Shown: positions 24,701 to 63,071 of the stretch, in pieces
Layout: each line of letters opens with the position of its first letter
Position numbering within the stretch: the stretch's first letter is position 1
Assembly: GCA_965112735.1 (NCBI GenBank)
Contig: OZ218963.1
Coordinates: 2,480,001-2,544,000 of the forward strand
Length of the DNA stretch: 64,000 bases
Origin: Phaeosaccion multiseriatum
Lineage: Eukaryota > Protista > Ochrophyta, other classes
Reading direction: 5' to 3'
The notes under the pieces: model-generated
What the model was told of the DNA's origin: nothing
What the model saw: only the letters and a program-made list of their open reading frames with translations
Databases searched by the model: none
Program-made: the position numbers and the translations under genes

Positions 24701-24878
24701 ATCTTTAATTCAAATTCGGACCCAGGTCCTCGACGAAATGGATTTTGAGAATTATATTTTTCTGTGAAAGTCTTCGGGCGGACTCTCAACTCAATCTCAA
24801 TGCCAATTGTTTTCCAAAAAATAATAATTCTCAGAATCCATTTCGTCGAGGACCTGGGTCCGAATTCGAATTAAAGAT
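24701..24878. repeat. 178-bp palindromic element, copy A
   Basis: ~55-bp inverted arms with core ttcgaattcggacccaggtcctcgacgaaatggatt. Confidence 0.92.
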
Positions 24879-25285
24879 TACCCGTTTTTGATCGACCTTG
24901 TCTCTACAACTTTAGCTCTTTATTATACAAGGTACACGCGTAATCCGAATGAAAGGGGGCATTATGTCGACTAATACTACAAAATCGTCAAGGAATACGT
25001 GAAAGGCTTTGACCACGAGTTCGATGAAGGATCCCGGCGGCATTATTTACTTTGCAAGTGATGATAGGGTACTTGCGAGCGATTTCTCGAAGATTCTTCT
25101 CCTCAAGCGTTTTTTTCGATTTACTTCCTACGAACGCGGACGGATACATGGATAATCCCGACTCAAATACTGGATGAAACTGGAAGAATGCAAAGATTGC
25201 GGGATTTGTGATAGATACATTATTTTCTTAAACGAAATTCGTGTCCTTCCCGAAAAAGTCTGAAAGTGGATGACACTTCACGCCT

Positions 25286-31023: not shown

Positions 31024-31606
31024 TCAAACGGCCATCGGTGCGCGAATCCTTTCATGAGGAAAGTAACCTATAAGTGAAAAGTCCTTTGAAGTCATCTCCT
31101 TCCAATCCTTGTCCTTGACGCCCTTGTCCAACCCAAGTCTGGGGAGACACAGTGAATCGCGTCGCAGCTGCTCTTTTACCGCGTCGACGTGCGTTTTGTA
31201 GATATGCGCATCCCCGAAGGAAATGATCAACTTTGCAGGTACCATACCAACCTTTTCTGCGACCAAGTGCAACAGTATACTGTAGGAAGCGATATTGTAC
31301 GGGACTCCTAAAAACAAGTCCGCACTTCGCTGGAACATGTGACACGACAGTTCAAAGTTGTCCCCAACCTTCTCCGATTGGAACTGTACAACGATACCGT
31401 GACAGGGGTGGAGTACACACTCTTCGAGTTGAAGGGGGTTATACGTCGTCATCATGATTCTCCGACTGAAGGGGTCCGTTTTTAGCAATCGGACTACCTC
31501 TTCGAGTTGATCCACGTAGCGTTCCCTTGCACTCGGATCTGTACTCGGGTTTTCCACATCTCGCTTGAAAGGTAGTCCAAAATGCCTCCAGTTATAGCCA
31601 TACATT
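31024..31606 (-). pseudogene. DHFR-thymidylate synthase, 3' part (TS catalytic half)
   Basis: YGYNWRHFG, SRRI, LHPCH (catalytic Cys), QRSADLFLGVPYNIASY, GDAHIY. Confidence 0.96.
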
Positions 31607-31655: not shown

Positions 31656-34451
31656 CTAATCGACATTTTCTTCCTCCTCCGATGAACTCGGACGACAGAG
31701 ATACGATGGTCTTTCTAAACCCAGGAGCTGGTGAATGCCACACATCCCGATGTTTACACTAGCCATGATGTCTCTGTCGATGAAGTTCACCGGGCAAGAA
31801 GAACCGTCGTCTGTTTGAGTTTTGCACTGAAACACCCGAGAGCTCTGTCCCTCACCACTTTTATCCACCTTTTCACCACACCCGCAACACTTTTGACTTG
31901 TAAAATACTCGTCGATGAGTACCACGGGGCATCTGCATGCCAGAACTCGAAGAAGCGCCTTCTTAGGTAGACTCCCTCTACTTCCAGCTCCAAACTGCGC
32001 TCCGCCGAAGAAGACGACACGGATCGAAATTCTACCGTGTAAGCGCTCCCGAAGAAAGTCTCTTCTATCCCTTGAGGCCTGAGACAACATGTTTTCTTTG
32101 CTCATTACCCGTCCTCTTGAATCTCTCCCGCAAAGATCTCGTGCCATACGAGCGAGTTCTCGGTATTTGGCCCGATACCTGGCAAACCGTCTCTTCTTCC
32201 TGTCAATGCTGTGATACTCCTTGTAGTTTGTCTTCAAGTATTTGTAAGTACACTTGACAAACTCTTCCGCGTCCTGAAGGATACCACTCCTAAGCGAGAC
32301 ATTCATCTTCGCCTCGGACATGTCTTTCACGGCAGGAATTTCCCGTCTGCTCGCTTCGAATTTCGCCGCGTGGTTTCTTAACGAGTAGAACTTGTACTCA
32401 GAGGTTTTCTTCAAACGACCAGTTTTCTTGCAGTCCTGGGGTTTCACTCCAGAATGCACTTTTGCTCGTGTATGTGCAATGGTATTGACTCCGCCCGGGT
32501 CAACATGCACTGATTCGATGAAAGAAGCTGCGTCGTGGTGTTCGGGGGCCACTGCGGCCAATATATCATCTGGAACCTTGGCTGCCGATCGGACGAGGCC
32601 TCGGTGATGGACAGGATTCGTGATGTCAAATACTCCTGTGACACTGTCATACCCAGATTTTTCAAGCTCCGCCACTCCCGATGCGAGAGAGCCTATCGTC
32701 AATAAGAGGACATTGACTTGTTCCCCGTCCGTGGTGATGCTATTCACCAGGGACGGTATAGGCATGGTCGGATCTGCTTTTGCTCGAGCATAGTCCTGTT
32801 CGCTCGCCATCCATGGAGGTATAATTCTCAGCCCCTTCAGAATCTTCCTCTTCCTTCGAAGTACCTTTCGTCTCCCACTGGTACTATGACCACGCTTAGG
32901 TCTTGTGTCGTCTTTCACGCCCCCGACAAGGTCGAAACCTCGATTGTACCAAAAAGGGTCGCCTCTTGATGACTTCAACGATGACGACTCGATATGGTCA
33001 ATTTCATCCTCGGGAATTCCCATGTCTTTCCCAGCGGTGGTCTCCATCTTATGCACCTTGGCCGAGATCAAAGACATCGTCTCCCCGTCAATCTGTACGA
33101 AAGTGGGACTGTTCGTAAACACAGGGAGTATCGTCCATGCCTTCGGCACATTGTTCATGCCAGGCTTCTGCTTCTCCTCGTACAGGGCAGTCCGCCCATC
33201 TCGGGCCTTCTTCATGACACTCCTGAACTCCTTAGCCTGTGCCTTCGTCAATTCCTCCTTCCACGAGGGGTGGTTTTCGTCAAGTGTCTCAGGGACCCAA
33301 GAAGGGCATTCGACGATTCCTAACGCAAGGCTGTCTCGTTGTTTAAAAACACCGCCCAATGTGTAAGATGACTTCACACTCTTCTGAATGTCGTTGATTT
33401 CCTTCCACATATCGTCCCTTTGTTTTCGGACAGGTTGTTGTTGTCTCATGAACTCGCGTAGAATTGGAATCACCTTCTGAGAATATGTCGACCAGTACAG
33501 AAATCTCCCATGCGGATGTTCCTCTTTGTCCTTCTTCGGTGTCTTTGCTTTTTTCTCGGGAGGAGCACTCTTCCCTTCCTTTGAGGGTATGTCGTTGTAG
33601 AACTCCCTGAAAACATCGCCCCGGTAGAAGTGATATAGTATGAAGACGCGCCCCTTCCAATCGTCGTCCAGGCGCCCGCCCTTACGATCTGAATTAAGAC
33701 ATCGGGAGAGAACCTGTATCGCATCATCTTCTGACGTTGTCTTCAATGCCTTCACCATCGCAATCGATATCTGACCCAGAATCTTGTTGAAGAACTTCCT
33801 CGTGTCGCGAATGTCCCACATGGCTTTTTCGAGTTCGAAAGTGAGATGTGACTGGAGTCTGCCTTGAAAGTCTCCTTTGATAGATTGCCGCATTGCAGTA
33901 ACCATCACACCACTTTGAGCGTATTGTGCTCTTGAGAGGTACCCGTCTTGCAGTTCCTTTAACAACTCGGGATCGATCTGGTGGTTTGCTAGATATCCAT
34001 CGATGTCGGGATCCTTAATGAGTTTTGTCGATCTTGACGTTATTCCAAGGAATCTGGGCCAAAGTTGTTGGATATACGTCCGATTCGTGTAATGCTCAAA
34101 CTCCTTTCCATCCACGGACCCTTTCCAAGCTTTGTAGTTCAGGTAGACTGATATCAGGTGAGATATCGTACCCATCGTAGATGATGCGGCATGAATGACG
34201 TCTCGAAAGTACGTCGTAGGTAGATCCCGGACTACTCTCGTGAAAGACACAGGGATTGTGCGGTGCCTCGTATTCTTCTTTTCCTCTGGGGGTAAGTGCT
34301 CAACACATGCGAAGGAAAGAAGATCCTTTTTCGTGTTCCCGATCTTCTCTGGAGTATCCGGTTGACCGGTACCAACACTGCACCCCGGAGTATCAGATTG
34401 ACCGGTACCATCACTACTCCCCCCTCCATCGTCCTCGAGAGGTCTCTTCAT
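31656..34451 (-). CDS. Fanzor1-type RNA-guided RuvC nuclease (TnpB homologue), 931 aa
   Basis: RuvC-I HVDPG, RuvC-II IDEYFTSQKC, Zn ribbon CCGC...C...C, RuvC-III DRDIMASVNI; also TDG and FFGGAQF motifs. Confidence 0.9.
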   Translation of the reverse strand: MKRPLEDDGGGSSDGTGQSDTPGCSVGTGQPDTPEKIGNTKKDLLSFACVEHLPPEEKKNTRHRTIPVSFTRVVRDLPTTYFRDVIHAASSTMGTISHLISVYLNYKAWKGSVDGKEFEHYTNRTYIQQLWPRFLGITSRSTKLIKDPDIDGYLANHQIDPELLKELQDGYLSRAQYAQSGVMVTAMRQSIKGDFQGRLQSHLTFELEKAMWDIRDTRKFFNKILGQISIAMVKALKTTSEDDAIQVLSRCLNSDRKGGRLDDDWKGRVFILYHFYRGDVFREFYNDIPSKEGKSAPPEKKAKTPKKDKEEHPHGRFLYWSTYSQKVIPILREFMRQQQPVRKQRDDMWKEINDIQKSVKSSYTLGGVFKQRDSLALGIVECPSWVPETLDENHPSWKEELTKAQAKEFRSVMKKARDGRTALYEEKQKPGMNNVPKAWTILPVFTNSPTFVQIDGETMSLISAKVHKMETTAGKDMGIPEDEIDHIESSSLKSSRGDPFWYNRGFDLVGGVKDDTRPKRGHSTSGRRKVLRRKRKILKGLRIIPPWMASEQDYARAKADPTMPIPSLVNSITTDGEQVNVLLLTIGSLASGVAELEKSGYDSVTGVFDITNPVHHRGLVRSAAKVPDDILAAVAPEHHDAASFIESVHVDPGGVNTIAHTRAKVHSGVKPQDCKKTGRLKKTSEYKFYSLRNHAAKFEASRREIPAVKDMSEAKMNVSLRSGILQDAEEFVKCTYKYLKTNYKEYHSIDRKKRRFARYRAKYRELARMARDLCGRDSRGRVMSKENMLSQASRDRRDFLRERLHGRISIRVVFFGGAQFGAGSRGSLPKKALLRVLACRCPVVLIDEYFTSQKCCGCGEKVDKSGEGQSSRVFQCKTQTDDGSSCPVNFIDRDIMASVNIGMCGIHQLLGLERPSYLCRPSSSEEEENVD

Positions 34452-34603: not shown

Positions 34604-35704
34604 TCAACCATTTGGGAATTCTCTCGTTGCGTCCAGAATCTTGCTTTCCCCAAGTCTAGCATGTTTCATCTCGATACACTTAAACAACCTCATGATATGC
34701 AGGCAATTGTCGAGGAAATCATAATATGACTTGTATCTGACCTTTGTCTTCTTGCCTTTCGAATTGTTCATATCCCTCTCCGATGAAAGCATTATGACAG
34801 TGTCAAGGAGTATGCGCGCTTCGAGTTCCTGGATAAAAAGAGAGGGGCTCATCGAGTGAGACTTTTCGAGATTAAGATTTGTCTTGAGCCTTCTGAAACT
34901 GGTTTCAACTGTCCACCTCTTCTTGTAGAGAGCCTGTATTCTCTTGACAGACGTATCGATGTCGGACATGCACACGTACTTCTTTCCATCAATAAAGTAT
35001 TTGTAGAGATAACAGGATTTCACTTGGCCGCCTACACTCAGGAGTAGTACATGTTGTTTGGTGCGATGATTGTGATAGAACGAGTGAGCTTCCCGGAAGG
35101 CAGTCCTCTTTAGACGAAATACGACGTGGACTTTTGCCTTCGTACACTCGAAGTATAGTGCTTTCGAGTAGTACCCTCTGTCAAATACGTGAATGTCCCC
35201 ATGTCTCGTGTGTTTAAGGTGGTCCAGAACGGAAAGTCGTTCGTTAAAATGCTTGGATACAACAGAGTCGACACATGTTCTCGTGTCCGTGTCAAACATA
35301 CTTGACAGCATGGCTAATGGTCTCTTTGCAGGACGACTTACATCACAATCATTTGTCCTCGTCTTGTATCCTTCTTTGGCGAAGGAAGGGTGAAAATGTA
35401 TTTTGGACCCATCGATGGCGAGGACTCGACACGTACGGGAACTTCTCTGAAATGATGAGTTTATTTCTTTAAAAATGTGCTCAGGTAGGCGCTTCCTGGC
35501 CCTCCCTAAAGCCTGTGGACTGAAGTTGGTCTCATTCGAACGCTTTAGAGTAAAGTCAAACCCCCGATTGTAAACGGACGCATTTGCAATACAGGAGAAA
35601 AGTGATAATGTATCGACTCCTTCCTTTCGTGCGCGCTGTCTCCACCTTTTGTCGGATGCATTTAGCTTTTGGACAAGCTTTTCTTGAAAAGTGCGTTGAG
35701 CCAT
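34604..35704 (-). CDS. IS4-family DDE transposase
   Basis: AIDGS, FDRGYYS and YKKRWTVETSFRRLK (Y-2-R-3-E-6-K signature). Confidence 0.93.
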   Translation of the reverse strand: MAQRTFQEKLVQKLNASDKRWRQRARKEGVDTLSLFSCIANASVYNRGFDFTLKRSNETNFSPQALGRARKRLPEHIFKEINSSFQRSSRTCRVLAIDGSKIHFHPSFAKEGYKTRTNDCDVSRPAKRPLAMLSSMFDTDTRTCVDSVVSKHFNERLSVLDHLKHTRHGDIHVFDRGYYSKALYFECTKAKVHVVFRLKRTAFREAHSFYHNHRTKQHVLLLSVGGQVKSCYLYKYFIDGKKYVCMSDIDTSVKRIQALYKKRWTVETSFRRLKTNLNLEKSHSMSPSLFIQELEARILLDTVIMLSSERDMNNSKGKKTKVRYKSYYDFLDNCLHIMRLFKCIEMKHARLGESKILDATREFPNG

Positions 35705-35744: not shown

Positions 35745-35922
35745 ATCTCATATTCGAATTCGGACCCAGGTCCTCGACGAAATGGATTTCTAAAATTAAA
35801 TTTTTTTGTGAATGACTTCAAGCTGATTTGCAACTCTACCATATCTCAAATCTTTTTCTACAAAAAGATAATTTCAGAAATCCATTTCGTCGAGGACCTG
35901 GGTCCAAATTCGAATTGAAGAT
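35745..35922. repeat. 178-bp palindromic element, copy B (inside the IS4 element)
   Basis: Same arms as copy A. Confidence 0.92.
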
Positions 35923-35972
35923 GGCCGGTTTTTTATAGCTTAAGTTTCTATATCCTTAAGTTTCCGTCACTG

Positions 35973-36822
35973 CATACATTGGGCCCATTTCTCCTTCTTT
36001 GTAGTGCACTAGACCTCTGCTGTCAAGGAATTCCCGACTAGTATTTCCCTTCCAGATGTTGACCCCCTTGTCTTCGGATTGGCGCGTCTGAGTGTCTCCC
36101 CGGAGAAAGAAAAGGAGCTCTTCAACAATGGCTTTGAAGGACATGCGTTTCGTGGTCATCAGAGGAAATCCATCTTTCATGTCGAAAGTCATCTGCTTTC
36201 CAAATGATCCCAGCGTCCCAGTTTTCGTGCGATCTTCTCTCTCGTGTCCATTTTCAAGGACATCTTTCATCACATCTAGGTATACCTGTTCATTTCCACC
36301 CGATTCTTCGACTAAACGCTTCTTTTCATAGGTTAGCACCCTGTAAGAAAGCCTTTCACGCTCATCGTAAATGAGCGGCGATGTCTCCGCGATAGAGAAT
36401 GAAGAGGGTACGAGGGGGAAAAATCGGTCACACTTGTACTGCTTTGTCTCTTCCGAGAGACTCGTCAGCACAATCCGGTCCGCCTGGTTCATAAAGTGGC
36501 GATATATCTCCTCCCCGCCGATCACGTATGTACTCTGATCAACCCTGTGTTCATCGACCCAGTTGTCTGCAGTTTGCATGTTCATGAAGGTACATCCCGA
36601 GACTGGTTCCGTTGCACTGCCCGTGACAACTATGTTCGACCTTCCCGGGAGGGGACGGTGGTTTTCCGGCAAAGAGTCGAACGTTCGACGACCCATGATC
36701 ACGGTCGTACCAGTGGTCGTCAAGCGAAAATGAGCCATGTCCCCCAGAATCTTCCAGGGAAGTTTCCCATCTTTGCCGATTCCTCGGCGAGAATCGCAAC
36801 ATGCGATCATCGAAAGAGTCAT
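35973..36822 (-). pseudogene. DHFR-thymidylate synthase, 5' part (DHFR + TS N-terminus)
   Basis: GIGKDGKLPW, VIMGRRT, RPLPGRSNIV, VIGGEEIY; TS DRTKTGT, FPLMTTK, EELLFFL, GEMGPMY. Confidence 0.96.
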
Positions 36823-36926: not shown

Positions 36927-38552
36927 ATGGGCCTCACCGTCGAAAATGCCACTATTACAGGATCTCTCAATGCTAATCTAGGCCAATTGGCGGACGTTGA
37001 TACAAGCGTTGCAGCGACACACAATCAGGTCCTTGCGTACAACGACAACTCGGTAGACCCTACTTACTCTACGGCATATGTCACCAAGAATATCGCTCTC
37101 GACGACCTTGGGAACGTGGAGGTCGCCGCTGCCCCGACTCATCAGTCAGTACTGGTGTGGAACGATACAACGGAGGACGCTACGTACCCAACAACGTGGA
37201 TAGACAAAGGACTAAGCACGGACATGTTCGGATCGAATTTCTTTTCGACTTTGAGCACACTCGTCGAGGGAATTGTCACCACCGCAAGGTCGAAGGTACT
37301 TGGCGCACAGGGAGAGCCTCTTCTCGCCACGATGGGAATGTTCACCGGAGACGCAGGGAGCGGGGGCTTCACTTCCACCCTTGTATCAGCCGGGGACAAG
37401 AACCCCCTTTTCAAGAAGGAACCCACCGACTCCGACTTTGTATTCGTGCAGTCCCTGGACGCAGGGGAGATTCTAAACACCACCTATGCGGCGGGAACCG
37501 TTTTCCAGAGCGAGAAGGGGATCGGGGGGTTCTCGGGGCCCTCGCCATTCCCCCTAGGGTCGGACGCCTTCGCGGCAACGTCCTTCGTACTATATGCCCA
37601 ACAGGGAACCGTGGAGGTGCGCGTGATGGCCTCCTCCCTCGAAGCGGTCGTTACTCTATACCAATCCGACGGAGTCACTGTGGAAGACGGACCTATCACA
37701 CTCGACGCCTACGGCTTGGGTACACTCACCTGTAGTACCAACGACCAGTTCATACTATCATCCTCCTCGGCCGTGTTCTGTGCGTCCTCTTCGACTACAG
37801 GACAGGACAAAATGCTCATTCTGCCACCCGCCACGGAAATCATCGGGTACAACCGCAACTCCTATGTGATGACATCGGCGACCGTCAATACGAACGTTAC
37901 CTACTATCGCCGCAACGGGAACACCGGGACCGTGGTCGTCACACCCGGAACGCCCTTCTCATTAACCGCCGCCGCAGGGAACAACGCAGACTTTAACAAT
38001 AACGGGGCACTCATTCTCCGAGCAGACGCACCTATCGCCGCCTTCACGTCCAACGACTCCGTGGGAGACGAGGCCGTCGGGTTCCTGCCCCTCACTGCGC
38101 TCGCGCAACGATTCCCCAACCCATGTACCCTCGACGACGACGCGGACTATGGTGTATCGTGTGTCGCCGTGACTTCGCCCTATGAGGGTACGGCGACGAT
38201 CTACGACGACTCCGGGACCGTTGTCGATACCTTCAACTACAACCGTCCGGGCGCATTGGACCCTATCACAATCGAGAATCAGCTTCTGCCGGCGGCCGGT
38301 CGGTGGAATCCACTCGAAGTCGGTGTAGGCACTACGTATGGACCCGGAGGATACATCGAAACCAGTACGCCCGCCATGTGCATCGTCAACGCCACGTCCT
38401 CCACGGACTGGTCCGCGACTCTAGGCGACGAACTCGTTCTTCCCGGCACGATTCCAGACGAAATAAAGGCCGAGATACGCGTAGACGCCGGAGGTTTCTT
38501 GCGCCGGAGAGACGTAGACGCGAGTGGTGCCGTAACGTGGAACGTTTGCTGA
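36927..38552 (+). CDS. Putative virion surface/fibre protein
   Basis: Two fibre-like repeats (LGQLADVD...NQVLAYND; LDDLGNVE...QSVLVWND); T/S/G/A-rich beta composition. Confidence 0.6.
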   Translation: MGLTVENATITGSLNANLGQLADVDTSVAATHNQVLAYNDNSVDPTYSTAYVTKNIALDDLGNVEVAAAPTHQSVLVWNDTTEDATYPTTWIDKGLSTDMFGSNFFSTLSTLVEGIVTTARSKVLGAQGEPLLATMGMFTGDAGSGGFTSTLVSAGDKNPLFKKEPTDSDFVFVQSLDAGEILNTTYAAGTVFQSEKGIGGFSGPSPFPLGSDAFAATSFVLYAQQGTVEVRVMASSLEAVVTLYQSDGVTVEDGPITLDAYGLGTLTCSTNDQFILSSSSAVFCASSSTTGQDKMLILPPATEIIGYNRNSYVMTSATVNTNVTYYRRNGNTGTVVVTPGTPFSLTAAAGNNADFNNNGALILRADAPIAAFTSNDSVGDEAVGFLPLTALAQRFPNPCTLDDDADYGVSCVAVTSPYEGTATIYDDSGTVVDTFNYNRPGALDPITIENQLLPAAGRWNPLEVGVGTTYGPGGYIETSTPAMCIVNATSSTDWSATLGDELVLPGTIPDEIKAEIRVDAGGFLRRRDVDASGAVTWNVC

Positions 38553-38603
38553 TAGTATGAATGTTCAATAAAATTATGTCATCTCTTCGTAAACGTAGCT
38601 TTC

Positions 38604-38946
38604 ATGAAGGGGTTATTTCGATTCACTAACATAGCCTTCAATAAGATCAAGGATCTTTCAGGAGGAGCAGGTGGAAAAGTAAAACTACAGATTGGAGAGT
38701 GCTCAACGAGGCATGTTCGATATAAATGTGTAGAAAAGAAATACGACTCTTCCGCAAAAGGGGAACAACATTTCTCCCGAGCGGTGGAGTCTGTATGTAT
38801 TACAAGAAACATCCCAGAAATCAAAGTGTTCGGTCCCGATGTGCACCACATAGACTTCAGGAATATGAGCATGAAGATGGCGTATATTGAGAGTAACACG
38901 CTTGAGAAAGTAATTAGAGATAATGATCTACTTGACAATTCCGTAG
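38604..38946 (+). CDS. Protein kinase, 5' part/exon 1 (N-lobe)
   Basis: Gly loop LSGGAGGKV, CVEKK, hinge MAYIESNTL; joins in frame to 41538. Confidence 0.8.
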
Positions 38947-39190
38947 GTATGGATTTCCAATTTACAAGATAATGTGATAAAAGAGTGAATTCTTGGTACT
39001 TAAATTGAGTCGTGACTAGGAAAATTCACAGTGTTCGTTTTGGGCCATACGTGTGGACGACAACACAAACATCAAAACAAGCAGATTTCACATTTTTCTT
39101 CATCATTTGAGAAAAATAGTGTGATATTATCAGTGGTAGTGCGTTTAAGAGCTGGGGAATAAAATGTTGTGGTGTACCATATAACATCCA

Positions 39191-41299
39191 GTGATCATTA
39201 TACCTGATCACCCCTCAACACATGAAAGCATTCTCGAATGTTTGTCTCCGCAACCACAATTAAAAAGAGGTTTGAAGTGTCCAGATCAACCCTCGTGCAG
39301 TGGGCCACGAGTGGAAATGTCCGATTCCGAAGGATGGGAGGAGACAAAGGAAAACGATTATACCATATCGACGACGTCGCAAACAAGTTCGGAGACAGTC
39401 GAAGCAGCCTCGCAGAACGAGAAAAGGTCATCTACGCCAGAGTCAGCTCGCCCAAACAAAAGGAAGACCTCGGAAGACAGATCTCCAGTCTACAGAGAGA
39501 CTATCCACAGCATCGACTTCTCTCAGACATTGGGTCGGGGCTCAACTACCATCGGCCCAGGTTTACAGCCCTTCTGGAACGAGTCATGCATGGCCGTATC
39601 TCAGAGATTGTCGTTTCCTACCGAGACAGACTCTGTCGCTACGGATTTGAACTCTTCGAGGCCGTCTGTAAACATCAAGGGACGAAGATCGTGGTTCAAA
39701 ATGAAAAGAACGTCTCCGACGACAACCATACAGAACTTGCCGAGGATCTCTTGGCCGTCTGTAATTTCTTCGTCGCTAGAAACAACGGGCGACGAGCCGC
39801 AGCAGCAAGAAAGAGACGGAGGACCCAAGAAGAGGAGGAGATTGACCAGCAAAAAGCAGCTGAAGAAGAAAAAGAAGAAGAAGGAAGAAGAAAGCGAAGA
39901 CGGGGTCCGTGGGGTGAAGATGAAGTTGAATCCGTCCGCGGCATGGAAAGCGAGACTTGAGAAGTGGTTCGGGACAGCTCGATGGACGTACAACAGATGT
40001 CTCTCTCTATACAACGACAACAAGTGTAAAATGAGCAGGAAGGACTTTCGTGCGAAAGTGATCGGTGCACATGTACACGGGAGGGTCAAGAAGAGATCTG
40101 GTTCGAGGAAGAAGCGGGCGGGGAAGAGACGAGGGTGTTGGAGGAAGAAGCCTCCTGCTTCTTCTTGTGAACGAAAGACTGCGTGGGTCTTGGATACACC
40201 AATGGAGATCCGTGACCAGGCAATGATTGACCTGGTCAAAGCGTTTGAGAGCAATATTGCAAAGTGCCAGAAGAACCCAGGTGAACATCATTTCAAACTC
40301 GACTTCCGGAAAAAGAAGGCTGTGCAGACTATCAAGATCCCGGGAAAGTTCCTACATGGGAGGAAAGAAGGAAAGAAGGGAGGTATAATCTTCCCCAACT
40401 TCACGGAGAAGGAACCTCTTCATGGATTCGAGGAATACTCTGCCTTCGACGGAGAAGCAATACTGCAGAGAGATAGGTGCGGGACCTTCTGGGTGTTGAT
40501 GACACGTAAAAAGCCCCTCGCGTCAAAAATTGTGGGGGATGAGGAAGACCTACGTGCATGCGGGCTAGACCCTGGCATTCGCTGTTTCAATACAGTCATC
40601 GACACAAAGGGGGTCGTCACGGAAGTCGGCAAAGGAGACATTGGACGTATCTACAGGCTATGTGCACACTTGGACCGCTTGCAGTCTAGATCGGAAGATA
40701 AGAGTGTCAAGGCCAAAGTGAGGTACAGAAGGCGTCGGGCGTGGCATCGTGCCATCCGGAGGATCAAGAGTCTCATACAGGATGTCCACCGCAAAACCTG
40801 CAAATTCCTGTGTGAAAGCTACGACGTCATCTTCATCCCCGAGTTCAACACGCAGACAATGGTGAAAAAGAAACCACCCCCCGCGTATAGGGCAGTTAGC
40901 AAGAAGGTCGCCCGGGCAATGATGACCTGGTCCCACTACAAATTTCGCGAGATGCTAAAATCCAAGGCACTCGAGACAGGGACCAAGGTTGTTATGGTAA
41001 CGGAGGAGTACACTACCAAAACGTGTTCACAGTGTGGACACGTCAACCACGACATCCGGGATAAGAAGGTATTTCGTTGCCAGAGGAATGGATGCAATTT
41101 CGTCGGTGGAAGAGACATCAATGGCGCATTGAATGTCCTGATCAAGAGCATCGTCGAACAAGGACTGAAGATTACTTGGTCCGTTTACGAACAAGTCCTG
41201 GAGCAATCCCGGGCGAACGCGTCCTCGGCGGGGACTTTGGGGCCTACGGTCCCAGAGTTTCCAATGGGGACTTTGGGGCCTATCCCCCCTTCTACGTAA
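39191..41299 (+). CDS. tnpB: Fanzor2/TnpB RNA-guided RuvC nuclease (start uncertain; N-terminus overlaps tnpA in another frame)
   Basis: WFGTARWTYN; GLDPG; IPEF; WSHYKFREML; EEYTTKTCSQCG...CQRNGC; RDINGALN. Confidence 0.93.
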   Translation: MIIIPDHPSTHESILECLSPQPQLKRGLKCPDQPSCSGPRVEMSDSEGWEETKENDYTISTTSQTSSETVEAASQNEKRSSTPESARPNKRKTSEDRSPVYRETIHSIDFSQTLGRGSTTIGPGLQPFWNESCMAVSQRLSFPTETDSVATDLNSSRPSVNIKGRRSWFKMKRTSPTTTIQNLPRISWPSVISSSLETTGDEPQQQERDGGPKKRRRLTSKKQLKKKKKKKEEESEDGVRGVKMKLNPSAAWKARLEKWFGTARWTYNRCLSLYNDNKCKMSRKDFRAKVIGAHVHGRVKKRSGSRKKRAGKRRGCWRKKPPASSCERKTAWVLDTPMEIRDQAMIDLVKAFESNIAKCQKNPGEHHFKLDFRKKKAVQTIKIPGKFLHGRKEGKKGGIIFPNFTEKEPLHGFEEYSAFDGEAILQRDRCGTFWVLMTRKKPLASKIVGDEEDLRACGLDPGIRCFNTVIDTKGVVTEVGKGDIGRIYRLCAHLDRLQSRSEDKSVKAKVRYRRRRAWHRAIRRIKSLIQDVHRKTCKFLCESYDVIFIPEFNTQTMVKKKPPPAYRAVSKKVARAMMTWSHYKFREMLKSKALETGTKVVMVTEEYTTKTCSQCGHVNHDIRDKKVFRCQRNGCNFVGGRDINGALNVLIKSIVEQGLKITWSVYEQVLEQSRANASSAGTLGPTVPEFPMGTLGPIPPST
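39238..39960 (+). CDS. tnpA: IS607 TnpA: MerR-like HTH + serine recombinase
   Basis: VSRSTLVQW...KRLY HTH; IYARVSSPKQKEDLGRQ (catalytic Ser); DIGSGLN; DRLCRYGF; ELAEDLLAV. Confidence 0.95.
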   Translation: MFVSATTIKKRFEVSRSTLVQWATSGNVRFRRMGGDKGKRLYHIDDVANKFGDSRSSLAEREKVIYARVSSPKQKEDLGRQISSLQRDYPQHRLLSDIGSGLNYHRPRFTALLERVMHGRISEIVVSYRDRLCRYGFELFEAVCKHQGTKIVVQNEKNVSDDNHTELAEDLLAVCNFFVARNNGRRAAAARKRRRTQEEEEIDQQKAAEEEKEEEGRRKRRRGPWGEDEVESVRGMESET

Positions 41300-41558
41300 G
41301 GAGAAGGTGTATTGGAACTGGCTAATGAGGAGTCTCAAGGAATGAAGGGGGGTGACAACTACTGGCAGGACGAAAGCTGGTCCGGATTTTTATCGGGAAA
41401 GGCGATTCCAGTGTTTAAACGTTGCATCATGTTTTGGTTATGAGCTGGGGATAATTCCCCAGACCCTCCTAGATTTACCCTATGTATACTCGTAGTCAGT
41501 TCTGAGATTTCTGTGAGGAAACTCACTTAATTAATAGGCGATGCATCAAAAACCTTAA
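41200..41558 (+). ncRNA. Predicted Fanzor2 omegaRNA (scaffold up to the right end, guide from the flank)
   Basis: Position expected for TnpB/Fanzor omegaRNA; hairpin ctgggga-taat-tccccag at 41445-41462; boundaries inferred. Confidence 0.55.
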
Positions 41559-41959
41559 TCGTACATATATTCACCCTCTTAGAAGAGTTAATACAAACTC
41601 TTTCATACCACATGATATATCATGGAGATCTACACCCTGGAAACTTGATGATTCAAAAACTACCTAAAATACCAGAAGTGGCAAATTCGGAAGAGTTTCG
41701 AATAGATAGACTTAAGTTCGTAGACCTAGATGGAGTGAGAAAGTACCAACTGGAAGATCCCGACTTCTCTGAATGGTCTCGGGTTAAACAGTCGGAGGAA
41801 TTGGGGAACATGCTTCGCCCCCTTCTCACCATGGTCAGAAAGAAAAGACCTTACGTGTACACTGTGGAATCCCTCCTTAAATTAGCAAAAGAGTCGAGAT
41901 CTAGTACGATTGCGACGTGGTTCGAGAAAGATCTGGAATTCTCAAAGCAATATACATGA
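41538..41959 (+). CDS. Protein kinase, 3' part/exon 2 (C-lobe)
   Basis: YHGDLHPGNLMI catalytic loop, KFVDLDG; frame open back to the junction. Confidence 0.85.
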
Positions 41960-42083
41960 CTCAAGAAATACATTCCTCATCGCCTATCGCTCAAGTGTGA
42001 CCAATTTGGTTAAAGTTTCTACAAATTCTTAGTGTTATAATAAGGAATAAGTGCGAGACACTACAATCATCTCAACTAGGGTC

Positions 42084-43127
42084 TTATGACCTGTGTCGGA
42101 GATTATAACGATCTTCTTCAAGCCTTTGTTTCTTACGACTGTTTTCATCTTTGATATTCTCGTCGAAAATGTACACGTAAAAAGTCGTCAAGTCCAATAT
42201 AGCCAACGCTTCCGATATTGCTGTCTTGTAGAAGTGACATGTGGCTCCGTCGTCTAAACCTTCTCCTGAGAAACACAGGAACAAGTTTTTGAATGTGTCA
42301 TCTTTCGAAAAATTCACAAACAACTCTCTGTTTAAGGATACGAGTCCTATCAATTGTTCAAAACGCTTGGCATTCTTCAAGTACGACCCAAAAACCCAAG
42401 GGAGAGTTAGAGAATTATAGTTGCTTTCCCTGGAATCTGAGAACTCCGTAAGGCCAGTACGTTCATCAAATCTCACCCCGGCATCATTTTTAAAGATTGA
42501 ATCGAGAACGGACGTATCCTTCATCTTCCCACCCGTAAAGGTGTGGGATGGATGATCCAACCATCGTAGAATCGAGTCGAAGCCGTCTTTCCACTGCGAA
42601 TGAGTGTGGGTTTGTGCAGTTGCAGCAGCTGCGCCTATGACTACCTGGTTCGCCTTTTCACTCGTTTCCCTATTGACTGGTTTCTCCTCTTCGGGATAGG
42701 GGAAGAATCCGTATCTCTGGTACCAAGTTGCCCCCTTCGTTATAAGCATGGCAACGCGGAGATCGATTAGACAATTATTTATGTCTTTATAGGAGGCGTC
42801 TTGGAGGGTAATCCATTTGGCCCCAATTTCCCTAGAAAAATCGATGGATATCTTCAATAAATCTTTACCATTTACTCGTTGACAACTTCCCGTGTTCGTA
42901 TACTTCAGATCGTCTAGATGGACAGTATTTTCATCTATATCGTATTTTAATCGTAAACACATAGGTGATCCTACTTGAAAAACCCTGTACGTCAATTCAC
43001 CCATTTCCCAGTATATGTCTACGCTTTTGTTCCTAAAATAGGTTGAAACCAACGTTTTGAACCTGTTTTCAACTTCACTTGTATTCATTGTGCTACACCA
43101 GGTTAATATTTTTTTCGACAAAATCAA
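42084..43127 (-). CDS. GNAT-like hypothetical protein
   Basis: GKDLLK...GAKWITLQDAS...WYQRYGF resembles GNAT motifs A/B. Confidence 0.5.
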   Translation of the reverse strand: MILSKKILTWCSTMNTSEVENRFKTLVSTYFRNKSVDIYWEMGELTYRVFQVGSPMCLRLKYDIDENTVHLDDLKYTNTGSCQRVNGKDLLKISIDFSREIGAKWITLQDASYKDINNCLIDLRVAMLITKGATWYQRYGFFPYPEEEKPVNRETSEKANQVVIGAAAATAQTHTHSQWKDGFDSILRWLDHPSHTFTGGKMKDTSVLDSIFKNDAGVRFDERTGLTEFSDSRESNYNSLTLPWVFGSYLKNAKRFEQLIGLVSLNRELFVNFSKDDTFKNLFLCFSGEGLDDGATCHFYKTAISEALAILDLTTFYVYIFDENIKDENSRKKQRLEEDRYNLRHRS

Positions 43128-47700: not shown

Positions 47701-47878
47701 ATCTCTTATTCGAATTCGGACCCGGGTCCTAGACGAAATGGATTTTGAGAATTATGTTTTTCTGTAAAAGTTTTGAAGTGGACTCACAACTCGTTTCCAT
47801 CTCGATTTCAATATCAAAAAATAATAATTTCAGAAATCCATCTCGTCGAGGACCTGGGTCTGAATTTGAGTTAAAGGT
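47701..47878. repeat. 178-bp palindromic element, copy C
   Basis: Same arms with a few substitutions. Confidence 0.9.
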
Positions 47879-48099
47879 GTTCCACTTCTTCATTTTCAAG
47901 ACTTTAATTTGGCCATTAACATTTCAAGCGTACTACGTATAGAGTGTGAATCCTTTGGTGATACTATCACACTGTGTTCTTAGAAAACCAGAATAGTACG
48001 TGTCCCCCCTGGGTATCCCCCCGGTGTGCTTTTTTTCCCCTAATTAGTCGATAATCACAATCACTTTTACACTACGAGAACACATCTGAACACGCATCT

Positions 48100-51037: not shown

Positions 51038-51113
51038 TATTCCGCAAATGTACATCTCTCGATTTATAAGTCTGACAAAAGCCTCCCCCCCCCCCCTCAA
51101 AGGAAGGATTTAT

Positions 51114-54100
51114 ATGAAAAGCGCCAAACCCCCGAACTATCCGTACATATTGGTGAGAACAGGTCGCACTTCCGTCGGACTATGGGAGGTATTGTACGCT
51201 TCCGTCGGACTATGGGAGGTATTGTATGAAAAGCGCCAAACCCCCGAACTATCCGTACATATTGGTGAGAACAGGTCGCACTTCCGTCGGACTATGGGAG
51301 GTATTATATGAAAAGCGCCAAACCCCTGAACTATCCGTAGATATTGGTGAGAATAGGTCGCACTTCCATCGGACTATGGGAGGTATTGTATGAAAAGCGC
51401 CAAACCCCTGAACTATCCGTAGATATTGGTGAGAATAGGTCGCACTTCCGTTGGACTATGGGAGGTATTGTATGAAAAGCGCCAAACCCCCGAACTATCC
51501 GTAGATATTGGTGAGAATAGGTCGCACTTCCATCGGACTATGGGAGGTATTGTATGAAAAGCGCCACACCCCTGAACTATCCGTAGATATTGGTGAGAAT
51601 AGGTCGCACTTCCGTCGGACTATGGGAGGTATTGTATGAAAAGCGCCACCCCCCTATCTATCCGTAGATATTGGTGAGAATAGGTCGCACTTCCATCGGA
51701 CTACGGGAGGTATTGTATGAAAAGTGCCAAACCCCCGAACTATCCGTACATATTGGTGAGAACAGGTCGCACTTCCGTCGGACTATGGGAGGTATTGTAT
51801 GAAAAGCGCCGATTCTCGGTCTACTCATCTATCCTACCGAGAACGGAACACACTTCCATTGGACTCTGAATGGGGTGATATGAAAAAAGGGTCAATCCCA
51901 AATCCATCAATAGATTCTGATGAAGAATCAAGACTGACTCTTTTCGTTTCTTCAAAAAAAGTAATAGTTGGCTCCCCCCGATTCTGGTCCGGTGGAAGGG
52001 CGATTTGAATAAAAATGGATATACGTGCATTTGTGTGTTTAAATACCTGTATGTACGTGGCATGTGTGTGTAATTGGAAGCGTGTTTTCATAAGGTTACG
52101 TAATGTTATGAAAACACACTCCTACTGGACAATGTGTGAAAATGACCACATCTCATTATACTTATCTATCCGGATGAGAATATGCCACACTTCCGTCGGA
52201 CTACGGGAGGTATTGTATGAAAAGCGCCAAACCCTCGAACTATCCGTAGATATTGGTGAGAATAGGTCGCACTTCCATCGGACTACGGGAGGTATTGTAT
52301 GAAAAGCGCCAAACCCCCGAACTATCCGTAGATATTGGTGAGAATAGGTCGCACTTCCATCGGACTACGGGAGGTATTGTATGAAAAGCGCCAAACCCCC
52401 GAACTATCCGTAGATATTGGTGAGAATAGGTCGCACTTCCATCGGACTACGGGAGGTATTGTATGAAAAGCGCCAAACCCCCGAACTATCCGTACATATT
52501 GGTGAGAATAGGTCGCACTTCCATCGGACTACGGGAGGTATTGTATGAAAAGCGCCAAACCCCCGAACTATCCGTAGATATTGGTGAGAATAGGTCGCAC
52601 TTCCATCGGACTACGGGAGGTATTGTATGAAAAGCGCCAAACCCCCGAACTATCCGTACATATTGGTGAGAACAGGTCGCACTTCCGTCGGACTATGGGA
52701 GGTATTGTATGAAAAGCGCCAACCCCCCTATCTATCCGTAGATATTGGTGAGAATAGGTCGCACTTCCATCGGACTACGGGAGGTATTGTATGAAAAGCG
52801 CCAAACCCCCGAACTATCCGTAGATATTGGTGAGAATAGGTCGCACTTCCATCGGACTACGGGAGGTATTGTATGAAAAGCGCCAAACCCCCGAACTATC
52901 CGTAGATATTGGTGAGAATAGGTCGCACTTCCATCGGACTACGGGAGGTATTGTATGAAAAGCGCCAAACCCCCGAACTATCCGTAGATATTGGTGAGAA
53001 TAGGTCGCACTTCCATCGGACTACGGGAGGTATTGTATGAAAAGCGCCAAACCCCCGAACTATCCGTACATATTGGTGAGAATAGGTCGCACTTCCATCG
53101 GACTACGGGAGGTATTGTATGAAAAGCGCCAAACCCCCGAACTATCCGTAGATATTGGTGAGAATAGGTCGCACTTCCGTCGGACTACGGGAGGTATTGT
53201 ATGAAAAGCGCCAAACCCCTGAACTATCCGTACATATTGGTGAGAACAGGTCGCACTTCCGTCGGACTATGGGAGGTATTGTATGAAAAGCGCCGATTCT
53301 CGGTCTACTCATCTATCCTACCGAGAACGGAACACACTTCCATTGGACTCTGAATGGGGTGATATGAAAAAAGGGTCAATCCCAAATCCATCAATAGATT
53401 CTGATGAAGAATCAAGACTGACTCTTTTCGTTTCTTCAAAAAAAGTAATAGTTGGCTCCCCCCGATTCTGGTCCGGTGGAAGGGCGATTTGAATAAAAAT
53501 GGATATACGTGCATTTGTGTGTTTAAATACCTGTATGTACGTGGCATGTGTGTGTAATTGGAAGCGTGTTTTCATAAGGCTACGTAATGTTATGAAAACA
53601 CACTCCCACTGGACAATGTGTGAAAATGACCACATCTCATTATACTTATCTATCCGGATGAGAATATGCCACACTTCCGTCGGACTACGGGAGGTATTGT
53701 ATGAAAAGCGCCAAACCCCCGAACTATCCGTAGATATTGGTGAGAATAGGTCGCACTTCCATCGGACTACGGGAGGTATTGTATGAAAAGCGCCAAACCC
53801 CCGAACTATCCGTAGATATTGGTGAGAATAGGTCGCACTTCCATGGGACTACGGGAGGTATTGTATGAAAAGCGCCAAACCCCCTATCTATCCGTAGATA
53901 TTGGTGAGAATAGGTCACACTTCCATCGGACTATGGGAGGTATTGTATGAAAAGCGCCGATTCTCGGTCTACTCATCTATCCTACCGAGAACGGAACACA
54001 CTTCCATTGGACTCTGAATGGGGTGATATGAAAAAAGGGTCAATCCCAAATCCATCAATAGATTCTGATGAAGAATCAAGACTGACTCTTTTCGTTTCTT

Positions 54101-55020
54101 CAAAAAAAGTAATAGTTGGCTCCCCCCGATTCTGGTCCGGTGGAAGGGCGATTTGAATAAAAATGGATATACGTGCATTTGTGTGTTTAAATACCTGTAT
54201 GTACGTGGCATGTGTGTGTAATTGGAAGCGTGTTTACATAAGGTTACGTAATGTTATGAAAACACACGCCCACTGGACAATGCGTGAAAATGACCACATC
54301 TCATTATACTTATCTATCCGGATGAGAATAGGTCGCACTTCCATCGGACTACGGGAGGTATTGTATGAAAAGCGCCAAACCCCCGAACTATCCGTAGATA
54401 TTGGTGAGAATAGGTCGCACTTCCATCGGACTACGGGAGGTATTGTATGAAAAGCGCCAAACCCCCGAACTATCCGTAGATATTGGTGAGAATAGGTCGC
54501 ACTTCCATCGGACTACGGGAGGTATTGTCTGAAAAGCGCCAAACCCCCGAACTATCCGTAGATATTGGTGAGAATAGGTCGCACTTCCATCGGACTATGG
54601 GAGGTATTGTCTGAAAAGCGCCAACCCCCTATCTATCCGTAGATATTGGTGAGAATAGGTCGCACTTCCGTCGGACTACGGGAGGTATTGTCTGAGAAGC
54701 GCCGATTCTCAGTCTACTCATCTATCCTACCGAGAACGGAACACACTTCCATTGGACTCTGAATGGGGTGATATGAAAAAAGGGTCAATCCTAAATCCAT
54801 CAATCGATTCTGATGAAGAATCAAGACTGACTCTTTTCGTTTCTTCAAAAAAGTAATAGTTGGCTCCCCCCGAGTTTCGTCCGATGGGAGGGCGATTTGA
54901 ATAAGAATGGATATACGTGCATTTGTGTGTTTAAATACCTGTATTTACGTGGCATGTGTGTGTAATTGGAAGCGTGTTTACATAAGGTTACGTAATGTTA
55001 TGAAAACACACGCCCACTGG
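51114..55020. repeat. Higher-order satellite: 82-bp units (~8, 13, 3, 4 per run) separated by four ~320-380-bp repeated blocks
   Basis: Unit atgaaaagcgccaaacccccgaactatccgtagatattggtgagaataggtcgcacttccatcggactacgggaggtattgt; period 82 (e.g. 52299, 52381, 52463). Confidence 0.97.
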
Positions 55021-56584: not shown

Positions 56585-56755
56585 ATATTGAGGCCCAAAA
56601 TATACACTTTAAATTCTCCTGGTCACAGTTTAATCATAACGTTTTCTCCAAGGTCTCTTGTGATGATAGCGTATAACGATCGACTTCCGTCGGGTTTGTA
56701 GGGAGGGTGTGGTACATTGTCAACTAGACTTTCGTATTCTTCGCCTATTAATTAA

Positions 56756-58288
56756 GTGAGTTTTCTCACAGAAATCTCAGAACTGACTAGGAGTATGTAT
56801 GATGAGGATAAAAAAATTGGGAATATACAAATAGGAGTTGCTCGTTTGAACATTTTTTTATGTGTTCATCACGTAAATGCGCACGGAATGTCCCTCGGTG
56901 CGACAATCCGTTTCCCCTTTCGAGGGCCCATACCATTGCCTGTAGACGGGGGGATGGTGTACAACTTCTTCGAGCGCATCTCTGACACTCCGCAGACCGG
57001 GGAGATCGACCGCCATATTCAAAATCAGTGGACGTATTTCCCCGAGTATGTGGAGGACGAGGTATACGGCAAGGTTCTTCTCTGCGGGGAGAGGTCGATG
57101 TTCGCGGATGAAAACGGGGTCACGAAAAATGACTTAGACTCTTCGATATCTATTTGGATCCACATTGGAGAGGAGGACCAGCGAGGTGCGATACTGTCAT
57201 CAAGTGTAGGAAATGATCGCCATTCTGTGCTTTTGGAAATGTCAAAAACGGGAGAAGAAGTTTGGTTCGCGGTCAGATCGACTGACAAAACCTCTGCGGG
57301 AAGGGTTGCGGACAAGGCAAAGAAAACCGTATCCTATAACTTGTCGGGTTGGACGCACATTTCGTTACAGCGGGGTGCATCGGCGTCAAGTTTTGCGATG
57401 TACGTGAACGGGAAGGCCGTAAACATGGTGTTAGACCAAGCATTAGTCGGTTTCTCGGGACGCAAAATGGATCGACTTGGCTCGGCGGGATTTGGGAGGG
57501 CCCACTTCAAGGGCAAGGTTACAGACTACAGGATATACGACTTTATTCTGGCCGAACAAGACGTGGTCAATCTGTACGCTGAGGGTCCCAATCCGGACTC
57601 GCGACCCGATGCGGCGTCGGACACGGTCCCGGGCCTCATCTCCATCGCCGACCATGACAAGGGCTCCGCCGGGATTAGCGTGAATGTGGCTACAAACGGG
57701 GATGGGGAAATATACATGGTGCAATGTCGAACGGAGGAGGACCCCGTGCAGATAGATAACGAGTTCGTGTTCTCGGACAACACCACGCAGAACGTCGTGT
57801 TTTCCGGGCTACGTCCAGACACGACCTACACGGTTTCCATCTCCCCCAGTCCCCCGCTGGTGAAGACAGTCATTGTTTTCTCGAACGGTAAATCCAACCT
57901 TCACTTCGCAGAAATACAGGCCCTGGGCTCGGACAACCACAACTATTCTCTGGACGATGGCGTGGAGGTGTACCAGACCACGGTGGGATCCGAGGGCGTT
58001 GCTTCGAGAGCTATCGACGGGAATACCAGCGGAACTTACACGCAAGGATCTGTCACACATACCTCCGGGGGACGCATGACTACTGACGGAAAGCCCCTAA
58101 ACTACTTTCGCCTCGATTTCCCCGACCCCGTGCCCGTGGACCGTTTCGTTATATACAACAGGACTGACAATCAAACTTCATTGAACAAACTTTCAGGCGC
58201 ATTTGTCAAAGTGTTTGGTACTCAAAGAGAAGAAATTGCTTCTGAAAAACTGACAAATGCCAGAACACAGACGGTCTCTCTGGCTTGA
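56756..58288 (+). CDS. LamG + FN3 + F-type lectin/discoidin-like protein (likely start 56888)
   Basis: SISIWI...GWTHI...MYVNG...DYRIYD; GLRPDTTYTVSI; ASRAIDGNT...THT...IYNRTD. Confidence 0.8.
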   Translation: MSFLTEISELTRSMYDEDKKIGNIQIGVARLNIFLCVHHVNAHGMSLGATIRFPFRGPIPLPVDGGMVYNFFERISDTPQTGEIDRHIQNQWTYFPEYVEDEVYGKVLLCGERSMFADENGVTKNDLDSSISIWIHIGEEDQRGAILSSSVGNDRHSVLLEMSKTGEEVWFAVRSTDKTSAGRVADKAKKTVSYNLSGWTHISLQRGASASSFAMYVNGKAVNMVLDQALVGFSGRKMDRLGSAGFGRAHFKGKVTDYRIYDFILAEQDVVNLYAEGPNPDSRPDAASDTVPGLISIADHDKGSAGISVNVATNGDGEIYMVQCRTEEDPVQIDNEFVFSDNTTQNVVFSGLRPDTTYTVSISPSPPLVKTVIVFSNGKSNLHFAEIQALGSDNHNYSLDDGVEVYQTTVGSEGVASRAIDGNTSGTYTQGSVTHTSGGRMTTDGKPLNYFRLDFPDPVPVDRFVIYNRTDNQTSLNKLSGAFVKVFGTQREEIASEKLTNARTQTVSLA

Positions 58289-59720: not shown

Positions 59721-59894
59721 ACCTGAAATTCGAATTCGGACCCAGGTCCTCGACGAAATGGATTTCTGAAAATATTATTTTTCGAAAACGAAATCGAAAA
59801 GCAATCGAGTTGCGATGCCACTCGAAAACTTTCACAGAAAAATATAATTCTCAAAATCCATTTCGTCGAGGACCTGGGTCCGAATTCGAATAAG
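59721..59894. repeat. Palindromic element, copy D (inverted; last ~4 bp lost at the duplication junction)
   Basis: Same arms; spacer-proximal sequence is the reverse complement of copy A. Confidence 0.9.
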
Positions 59895-59989
59895 GCTACG
59901 TAATGTTATGAAAACACACTCCCACTGGACAATGTGTGAAAATGACCACATCTCATTATACTTATCTATCCGGATGAGAATATGCCACA

Positions 59990-61336: not shown

Positions 61337-61393
61337 AACCAGTGATTGATGATCAAGATAAATTGCGTCATTTTTTATAAATCCTAACTTTAT

Positions 61394-62900: not shown

Positions 62901-63071
62901 ATATTGAGGCCCAAAATATACACTTTAAATTCTCCTGGTCACAGTTTAATCATAACGTTTTCTCCAAGGTCTCTTGTGATGATAGCGTATAACGATCGAC
63001 TTCCGTCGGGTTTGTAGGGAGGGTGTGGTACATTGTCAACTAGACTTTCGTATTCTTCGCCTATTAATTAA

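Follow-up and report, generated by a model that had tools for sequence, protein, structure and literature searches.

A predicted omegaRNA scaffold at the right end of an IS607-type Fanzor2 transposon in a giant-virus-like region of the Phaeosaccion multiseriatum genome

Introduction

The guide RNAs of IS607-type TnpB and Fanzor2 nucleases, variously called omegaRNA, reRNA or fRNA, take their guide from the flank of the transposon and belong to elements with a serine recombinase as the partner protein. In the closest described systems, the RNA lies at or after the stop codon of the nuclease gene and runs to the right end of the element, and the 3′ end of the Fanzor2 omegaRNA pairs back into the scaffold. 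The reRNA of ISXfa1 is composed of a 144-nt scaffold and a 17-nt guide; its transposon-adjacent motif (TAM) is GGG, while the right end of ISXfa1 itself reads CGG. The guides of the known systems are 15–21 nt in length. The fRNA of the mimivirus nuclease ApmFNuc extends about 200 nt past the open reading frame (ORF), and the TAM measured for the Fanzor2 NlovFz2 is CCG (PMC10432273). Here I describe a locus in a 64,000-nt stretch of the genome of the ochrophyte Phaeosaccion multiseriatum (assembly GCA_965112735.1, contig OZ218963.1, positions 2,480,001 to 2,544,000 of the forward strand; this whole stretch is called the window, and its first letter is position 1). The segment from 41267 to 41540 of the window is probably the omegaRNA scaffold of an intact IS607-type transposon that was inserted at a CG dinucleotide in a kinase-like gene within a giant-virus-like region.

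This locus resembles the ISXfa1, ApmFNuc and NlovFz2 loci in the predicted position of the RNA, at or after the nuclease stop codon and up to the right end, as well as in a guide that would derive from the flank, the 3′ terminus that would pair back and the serine recombinase partner. As in ISXfa1, the three-nucleotide TAM and the right end would differ at position −3 (GGG/CGG in ISXfa1 and, by prediction, CCG/GCG here). The differences are that the junction appears to be CG and not GG, that a conserved 5′ motif is duplicated, and that the scaffold is longer, being about 270 nt here as read from the sequence and 215–240 nt in the relatives, versus 144 nt in ISXfa1.

The group B IStrons of Clostridium botulinum (PMC10690162, PMC13565253) are also comparable, since they are IS607-type elements co-oriented with the coding gene in which they reside, and their guide RNA spans the 3′ junction so that splicing would part the scaffold from the guide. 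In contrast to these IStrons, no group I ribozyme is present here (an Rfam cmscan of 38000–42500 on both strands gave no match at E values up to 1); splicing would depend on the spliceosome, and the sequence as it was before the insertion would not be regained. Spliceosomal introns are also known to arise from introner-type DNA transposons (Huff et al. 2016 and Gozashti et al. 2022, as cited in PMC10690162). Introners share with the present element the nature of a DNA transposon, termini that are potential splice sites and an in-frame message left behind. They differ in being short and non-autonomous, in occurring in large numbers and in their demonstrated splicing, and the present case is a single autonomous element of 2.6 kb known from DNA.

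Results

The kinase-like gene at 38604–41959 is interrupted by the IS607-type element, which consists of a left end, tnpA, the Fanzor2 gene and a right end; it was recognized with Pfam and was delimited to 38944–41538 by the CG junction model described below. The element and the kinase-like gene are both on the forward strand. Both kinase halves are still open: the upstream half (38604–38943) ends with the left CG junction dinucleotide (38942–38943), and the downstream half (41541–41959) bears the catalytic loop HGDLHPGN. It is most likely that the kinase gene is just interrupted by the element. The intact tnpA gene (39238–39960) encodes a serine recombinase with an N-terminal helix-turn-helix (HTH)-like match (residues 5–30), a Resolvase match (Pfam; residues 64–198, E 8e-19) and a basic tail resembling a nuclear localization signal (NLS), and its product is 50–58% identical to the TnpA proteins of the relatives. 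The 3′ end of tnpA overlaps with the start of the Fanzor2 gene (39960 versus 39920). The latter (39920–41299) is an intact ORF for a TnpB-like nuclease of 459 amino acids with the Pfam domains Cas12f1-like_TNB (E 3e-19), OrfB_IS605 and HTH_OrfB_IS605, and its translation shows GLDPG (the RuvC DPG motif), CSQC...CQRNGC (the zinc ribbon) and GRDING. The nearest solved structure is that of the mimivirus L79 Fanzor2 (9b0l, E 4e-19), which is only a distant relation. Basic, NLS-like runs of the KKRR type occur in the TnpA tail (39790–39960) and in an insertion of Fanzor2 (40080–40170), and they fit with an element working in the nucleus.

A word search with the Fanzor2 sequence found 349 relatives, the best of which is about 52% identical. 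They reside on metagenomic giant-virus contigs, with PolB, D5 and VLTF3 genes as neighbours, and in viral inserts of Ectocarpus and Pylaiella. The right ends of 11 independent relatives with about 50% protein identity were compared with that of the window, giving a set of 12 sequences, and it was revealed that these relatives share a nucleotide-conserved block extending from the Fanzor stop codon to the right end. In the window, the stop codon TAA (41297–41299) is followed by about 238–241 nt before the flank resumes, in agreement with the non-coding stretch of some 240 nt that an initial annotation of the window, made from its letters without database searches, had remarked on. The same annotation had listed a 16-nt direct repeat, gggactttggggccta, and exact copies of it are indeed present at 41231–41246 and 41267–41282. 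The first conserved block of the family is GGGGCTTTGGGGCCTACCCC, and the repeat is this same motif written twice, that is, a duplicated copy of the best-conserved motif of the family. An exact pair of 16-mers at a spacing of 36 nt is far above chance expectation. The first copy (GGGACTTTGGGGCCTA, 41231–41246) is an extra one; it has no CCCC following it, matches the family profile weakly (E 0.35) and has no match to the covariance model described below. Some relatives have the motif within the ORF (translated as ...GALGPTP), and others have it after the stop codon; its conservation is therefore not accounted for by coding.

At the other end of the block, AGG(C/T)G forms the right terminus in all 12 right ends and in two solo copies found in the window. 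These solo copies, which the initial annotation had not listed, repeat the element's last ~56 nt (41486–41541) on the minus strand with 93% identity; one is intergenic (56741–56796) and the second lies within a duplicated segment (63057–63112). Both were recognized by sequence identity and by the profile, both lie between genes, upstream of a duplicated gene for a 510-amino-acid protein, and both contain the 3′ strand of helix P2 (see below), the terminal hairpin and TAGGCGA. Because they are without the rest of the scaffold, they are interpreted as relics or recombinase sites and not as guide RNAs.

A profile built from the relatives only matched the window collinearly at 41264–41334 (E 3.4e-5) and at 41450–41541 (E 0.06) as well as both solo ends. 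A covariance model of the 5′ module, again from the relatives only and termed R1, had a single match in the 64 kb, at 41259–41344 (26 bits, E 1.5e-4). R1 holds just four base pairs, because MAFFT misaligned stem-loop 1, and is near to a sequence model. Rfam contained no family for the conserved block. A scan of viral contigs with Fanzor2 as a single protein query gave no relatives, and an IMG/VR scan with a 15-nt motif gave 17 matches that were essentially all chance matches in phage DNA (two of these loci, L018 and L020, have no TnpB-sized ORF). A metagenome scan with an 18-nt motif yielded three new loci with the motif in context; a complete right end was found only in L034, while L037 and L042 are truncated and L043 is a duplicate of L006/L007.

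The covariation was assessed from the RNAalifold table and from the helices in the per-sequence folds. For the 12 sequences, RNAalifold predicted 25 base pairs, 15 of which show compensatory double changes. The folds of every member contain a small GGGG/CCCC hairpin, stem-loop 1 directly behind the motif, the long-range helix P2 and base pairing between the 5′ motif and the 3′ terminus. In the window, the predicted scaffold of ~274 nt (41267–41540), which was delimited by the profile, R1, RNAalifold and the minimum free energy (MFE) fold, has an MFE of −91.2 kcal/mol (z −2.05). It would start with the conserved GGGRCUUUGGGGCCUA motif, overlapping the end of the Fanzor2 reading frame. Within the second repeat copy, the 5′ strand GCCUAU (41278–41283) of a closing helix is predicted to pair with AUAGGC (41534–41539) just before the guide in both the MFE and centroid folds. 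The equivalent pairing in the relatives is GCCUA/UAGGC, and the only covarying position is the sixth pair, which is U-A in the window and L048 and A-U in L047. Stem-loop 1 (CCUUCU/AGAAGG; 41288–41293 paired with 41302–41307) encloses the Fanzor2 stop codon in the per-sequence folds; a hairpin is found at the matching place in all 12 sequences, with a different stem sequence in each. The 5′ strand of P2 (41312–41324) pairs with its 3′ strand (41493–41505), at which the solo right-end copies begin, through 13 base pairs including G-U pairs, and its equivalent in the relatives (alignment columns 68–77 and 239–248) covaries. P2 would enclose a variable, multi-branch central domain. An arm of this domain in the MFE and centroid folds is the hairpin ctgggga-taat-tccccag (41445–41462) that the initial annotation had singled out. 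Its perfect 7-bp stem can be read from the sequence, while by itself it is just mildly unusual, and in the family alignment it falls in an insertion specific to the window. Farther downstream, a terminal hairpin GUGAG-GAAA-CUCAC (41513–41517 paired with 41522–41526) overlaps the TTCTGTGAG motif common to the right ends of the relatives; the terminal hairpin of the relatives is longer, and its 3′ strand is a T-rich tract. The conserved right terminus ATAGGCG (41534–41540) includes the 3′ strand of the closing helix, an AG (41536–41537) and the right CG (41539–41540).

The left boundary was fixed by two pairs of elements with unrelated flanks, L003/L049 (92% identical) and L005/L046 (77% identical). 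The homology in both pairs starts at (T)ACCG|CTTG with no GG nearby. In nine loci, the left end comes immediately after CCG; one of them is L001, whose left end CCG|TAAGT is the most similar to CCG|TAGGT in the window. Since the left junction (CCG) and the right terminus (GGCG) have no dinucleotide but CG in common, the element of the window was placed at 38944–41538 between a CG at 38942–38943 and a CG at 41539–41540. The same CG dinucleotide is present at both junctions with no longer target-site duplication, and this holds in the relatives too, while the canonical IS607 dinucleotide is GG. A protein search with the downstream kinase half alone found P0121, an uninterrupted kinase homologue of 249 amino acids, to which the two kinase halves were aligned separately and not as a joined protein. 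Residues 1–113 of the upstream half align with residues 1–121 of P0121 (59% identity, E 9e-46), the homology ending at Ser113 (TCC, 38940–38942), and residues 3–139 of the downstream half (41540–41956 translated) align with residues 124–248 (E 5e-38). Exactly two residues of P0121 (ER) lie between the aligned halves. The empty site predicted by the CG model is TTCCGATGCATC; its coding sequence (...TCC GAT GCA TCA..., Ser-Asp-Ala-Ser) fits P0121 without a gap, while a GG site, for which the predicted empty sequence is CCGTAGGCGATG, needs an insertion of two residues. The DNA encoding P0121 has no CCG at the equivalent site and gives no information on target choice for that reason. A left end at CG|CTTGAG (38899–38906), which would be similar to those of the relatives, was considered and rejected because it is out of frame and the kinase homology runs to residue 113. 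No further copy of the 25-mer at the left end was found in the window. In L002, about 70 nt inside the presumed left end (3765–3830) resemble the DNA outside the right end (6050–6135), which is the 3′ end of a neighbouring gene; this likeness may be a scar left by repair or homing, or else the left boundary of L002 may be further in.

From 41541 onward, the flanks of the window, of the solo copies and of all relatives differ from one another. Conservation stops here, and 41541 (ATGCATCAAAAACC...) is the most likely first position of the guide; the predicted guide is ATGCATCAAAAACCTTAATC (41541–41560) if its length is assumed from known systems. The TAM is predicted to be CCG at the end of the left flank (38941–38943), on the basis of the CCG before the left end in nine loci, and this agrees with the measured TAM of NlovFz2. 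The initial annotation had proposed an omegaRNA-type scaffold ending at the right end of the element, with a guide from the downstream kinase half, and both the homology and the covariation with the 11 relatives bear out this proposal. Its placement of the scaffold/guide boundary at 41538/41539 needs to be corrected to 41540/41541; the identity of the solo copies extends through ...TAGGCGA to 41541, 4 nt beyond the boundary proposed in that annotation. Its TAM, (G)TAGG, is replaced by the predicted CCG: TAGG is the first four nucleotides of the element itself, and the conserved motif of the left junction is CCG. The general layout stands, as it would for any insertion into a gene: the guide falls in the downstream half of the kinase, and the TAM is formed by the last bases of the upstream half.

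The following working of the element is suggested by analogy to ISXfa1 TnpB, ApmFNuc and NlovFz2. The transcript would run 15–20 nt into the flank from 41541, and this stretch would serve as the guide. Excision of the element by TnpA would produce the empty site ...AATTC-CG-ATGCATC..., in which the predicted TAM CCG adjoins the guide match. Fanzor2 would then cut this site, and repair would copy the element back. The conserved left junction CCG and the occupied right junction GCG differ at position −3, and the occupied site with GCG at that place would be spared. Several relatives lie 10–30 nt before the next start codon or just past a stop codon (L001 5548–5570, L003 6001–6033, L006 5437–5448); at such positions, the guides would match gene boundaries. 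A preference of the relatives for intergenic CCG sites is possible.

From ~24 kb onward, the window resembles giant-virus DNA within the algal genome, with long intronless ORFs, a dihydrofolate reductase-thymidylate synthase (DHFR-TS) gene and giant proteins with LamG and FN3 domains. The DHFR-TS gene, 2 kb away from the kinase-like gene, is split into 35956–36822 and 31024–31605 (minus strand) at position ~93–96 of the thymidylate synthase profile, and both of its halves are open. The insert of ~4.35 kb encodes an IS4-type DDE transposase (34604–35704) and a Fanzor1-like protein of 931 amino acids (31656–34451); a transposon combining IS4 and Fanzor has also been described in EsV-1 and Ectocarpus viral inserts (PMC13236599). 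A repeat of ~214 nt with internal inverted arms is found every 11–12 kb (24701–24914, 35745–35958, 47701–47914 and 59721–59934). One copy adjoins the IS4 transposase gene beside the DHFR half, and these repeats may be the ends of the IS4 transposon or miniature derivatives of it. Large arrays of an 82-bp tandem repeat occupy 51100–55020 and 59890–61340, with higher-order periods of 418, 500 and 582. The flanking block at 56.7–57.7 kb is duplicated at 63.0–64.0 kb.

Discussion

The omegaRNA interpretation of 41267–41540 was accepted in view of the comparison with the relatives and of the mapped guide RNAs of ISXfa1 and ApmFNuc, whose position is exactly that of the conserved block; Fanzor2 guide RNAs are also described as having a 3′ end that pairs back into the scaffold. 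Several points weigh against it or against its CG junction. The window is the most diverged member of the family; its central domain is unaligned with the relatives and its 3′ half matches their profile marginally. The whole fold is modestly better than shuffles, 5 of 200 of which were as stable, and the covariation support for the closing helix is small because this helix is nearly invariant. The window alone fits GG and CG alike, and the choice of CG draws on the relatives and one homologue at 44–59% identity; moreover, a palindromic CG crossover would be unusual for a serine recombinase. Among the sequencing runs searched, the locus was found only in four sets of DNA contigs, all from a single sample that may have been the source of the assembly, and in no RNA run; neither an empty allele nor a joint was found in these four sets. 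It might be considered that the conserved block is a DNA signal only, such as the recombinase sites of the right end, with no functional guide RNA, or that it is a dead RNA relic. The persistence of the last ~56 nt as solo copies, the presence of TTCTGTGAG in these solo ends with inverted TTCTCACA and TTCACA motifs in the left ends, and the lack of RNA among the runs containing the locus are in line with this idea. However, the conservation and the compensatory changes cover 230–270 nt, well beyond a recombinase site, the 5′ motif pairs with the 3′ terminus, the mapped guide RNAs of ISXfa1 and mimivirus Fanzor2 sit exactly here, and the Fanzor2 ORF is intact, making a purely DNA-level role improbable. 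A classical GG junction has somewhat more to recommend it, but is also unlikely. The element would then span 38948–41538 and leave an empty site of ...CCGTAGG|CGATG..., while (G)TAGG would be the TAM and CGATGC... the guide, as in the initial annotation. TAGG is found at both junctions of the window, canonical IS607 elements and group B IStrons insert after GG and finish in GG, and the known viral and bacterial IS607 TAMs are G-rich (NGGG, GGG). On the other hand, the homology within L003/L049 and within L005/L046 begins with ACCG, which neither contains GG nor is preceded by it, and the left end of L001 (CCG|TAAGT) also has none. CG(A) follows GG in 10 of the 12 right ends and in the solo copies and would have to be target sequence, and the empty site would need the two-residue insertion relative to P0121. 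As a TAM, TAGG would cause the element to cut itself, because its right end also finishes in TAGG.

The initial annotation had further suggested that splicing and nuclease activity compete for the same RNA, as in group I IStrons. According to this suggestion, the spliceosome also removes the element from the kinase pre-mRNA (GT at 38947–38948, AG at 41536–41537), and splicing and the omegaRNA draw on one transcript. GT-AG boundaries are in fact present: G|GTATGG and TTAATTAATAG|G look like splice sites, branch-like CTCAC and TTAAT lie 10–15 nt upstream, and G38946 joined to GC41538–41539 stays in frame with the kinase half bearing HGDLHPGN. The element is nuclear and has the orientation of the kinase gene, both halves of which are open, TnpA and Fanzor2 carry their basic NLS-like stretches, and spliceosomal introns occur in nuclear giant-virus genes, as in 14 of the 372 genes of an Ectocarpus viral insert (PMC13236599). 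Another candidate 5′ splice site, CC|GTAGGT (38942|38943), was rejected as out of frame. Nevertheless, such removal is doubtful on several grounds. With two GTs nearby, one in frame should turn up in about half of all cases, and the GT near the left end is not family-wide, since most relatives begin CG|CTTG. The AG|G at the right end is within the AGG(C/T)G terminus kept in 12 of 12 right ends, including those of the intergenic copies L001, L003 and L006, and the closing helix is located there; the T-rich tract of the relatives is the 3′ strand of a hairpin. The product of GT-AG splicing (Ser-Val-Gly-Asp-Ala-Ser) would keep six extra nucleotides (Val-Gly), giving four residues versus two in P0121 and the CG empty site, so this removal would not restore an uninterrupted coding sequence. 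The other viral ORFs seen in the window are all intronless, the split of the neighbouring DHFR-TS gene by a different transposon suggests that the region gathers plain insertions, and the runs containing the locus are DNA contigs that show no joint. Because splicing at 41537/41538 is unsupported, the competition between splicing and the guide RNA is likewise unsupported and is considered unlikely. In its fullest form, the suggestion would make the element a spliceosomal IStron, in which the TAGG...TAGG termini let the host spliceosome remove it with an in-frame footprint of 6 nt, and the closing helix and the guide are destroyed in the process so that splicing and guide production are mutually exclusive. 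There is a slim chance that this is so. A literature search found no paper on a spliceosomal counterpart of IStrons. If the suggestion is true, the IStron principle would apply to the eukaryotic spliceosome as well as to the self-splicing introns of bacteria.

The omegaRNA interpretation remains the preferred one. While a guide-RNA scaffold is an expected part of IS607-type elements, the present analysis provides a concrete model of the guide RNA in a giant-virus Fanzor2 clade that had not been characterised, giving the limits of the scaffold, a guide of 20 nt, CCG as the predicted TAM and GCG as the signal that would spare the occupied site. Judging from the junction sequences, this giant-virus clade appears to recombine at CG and not at the canonical GG of IS607.

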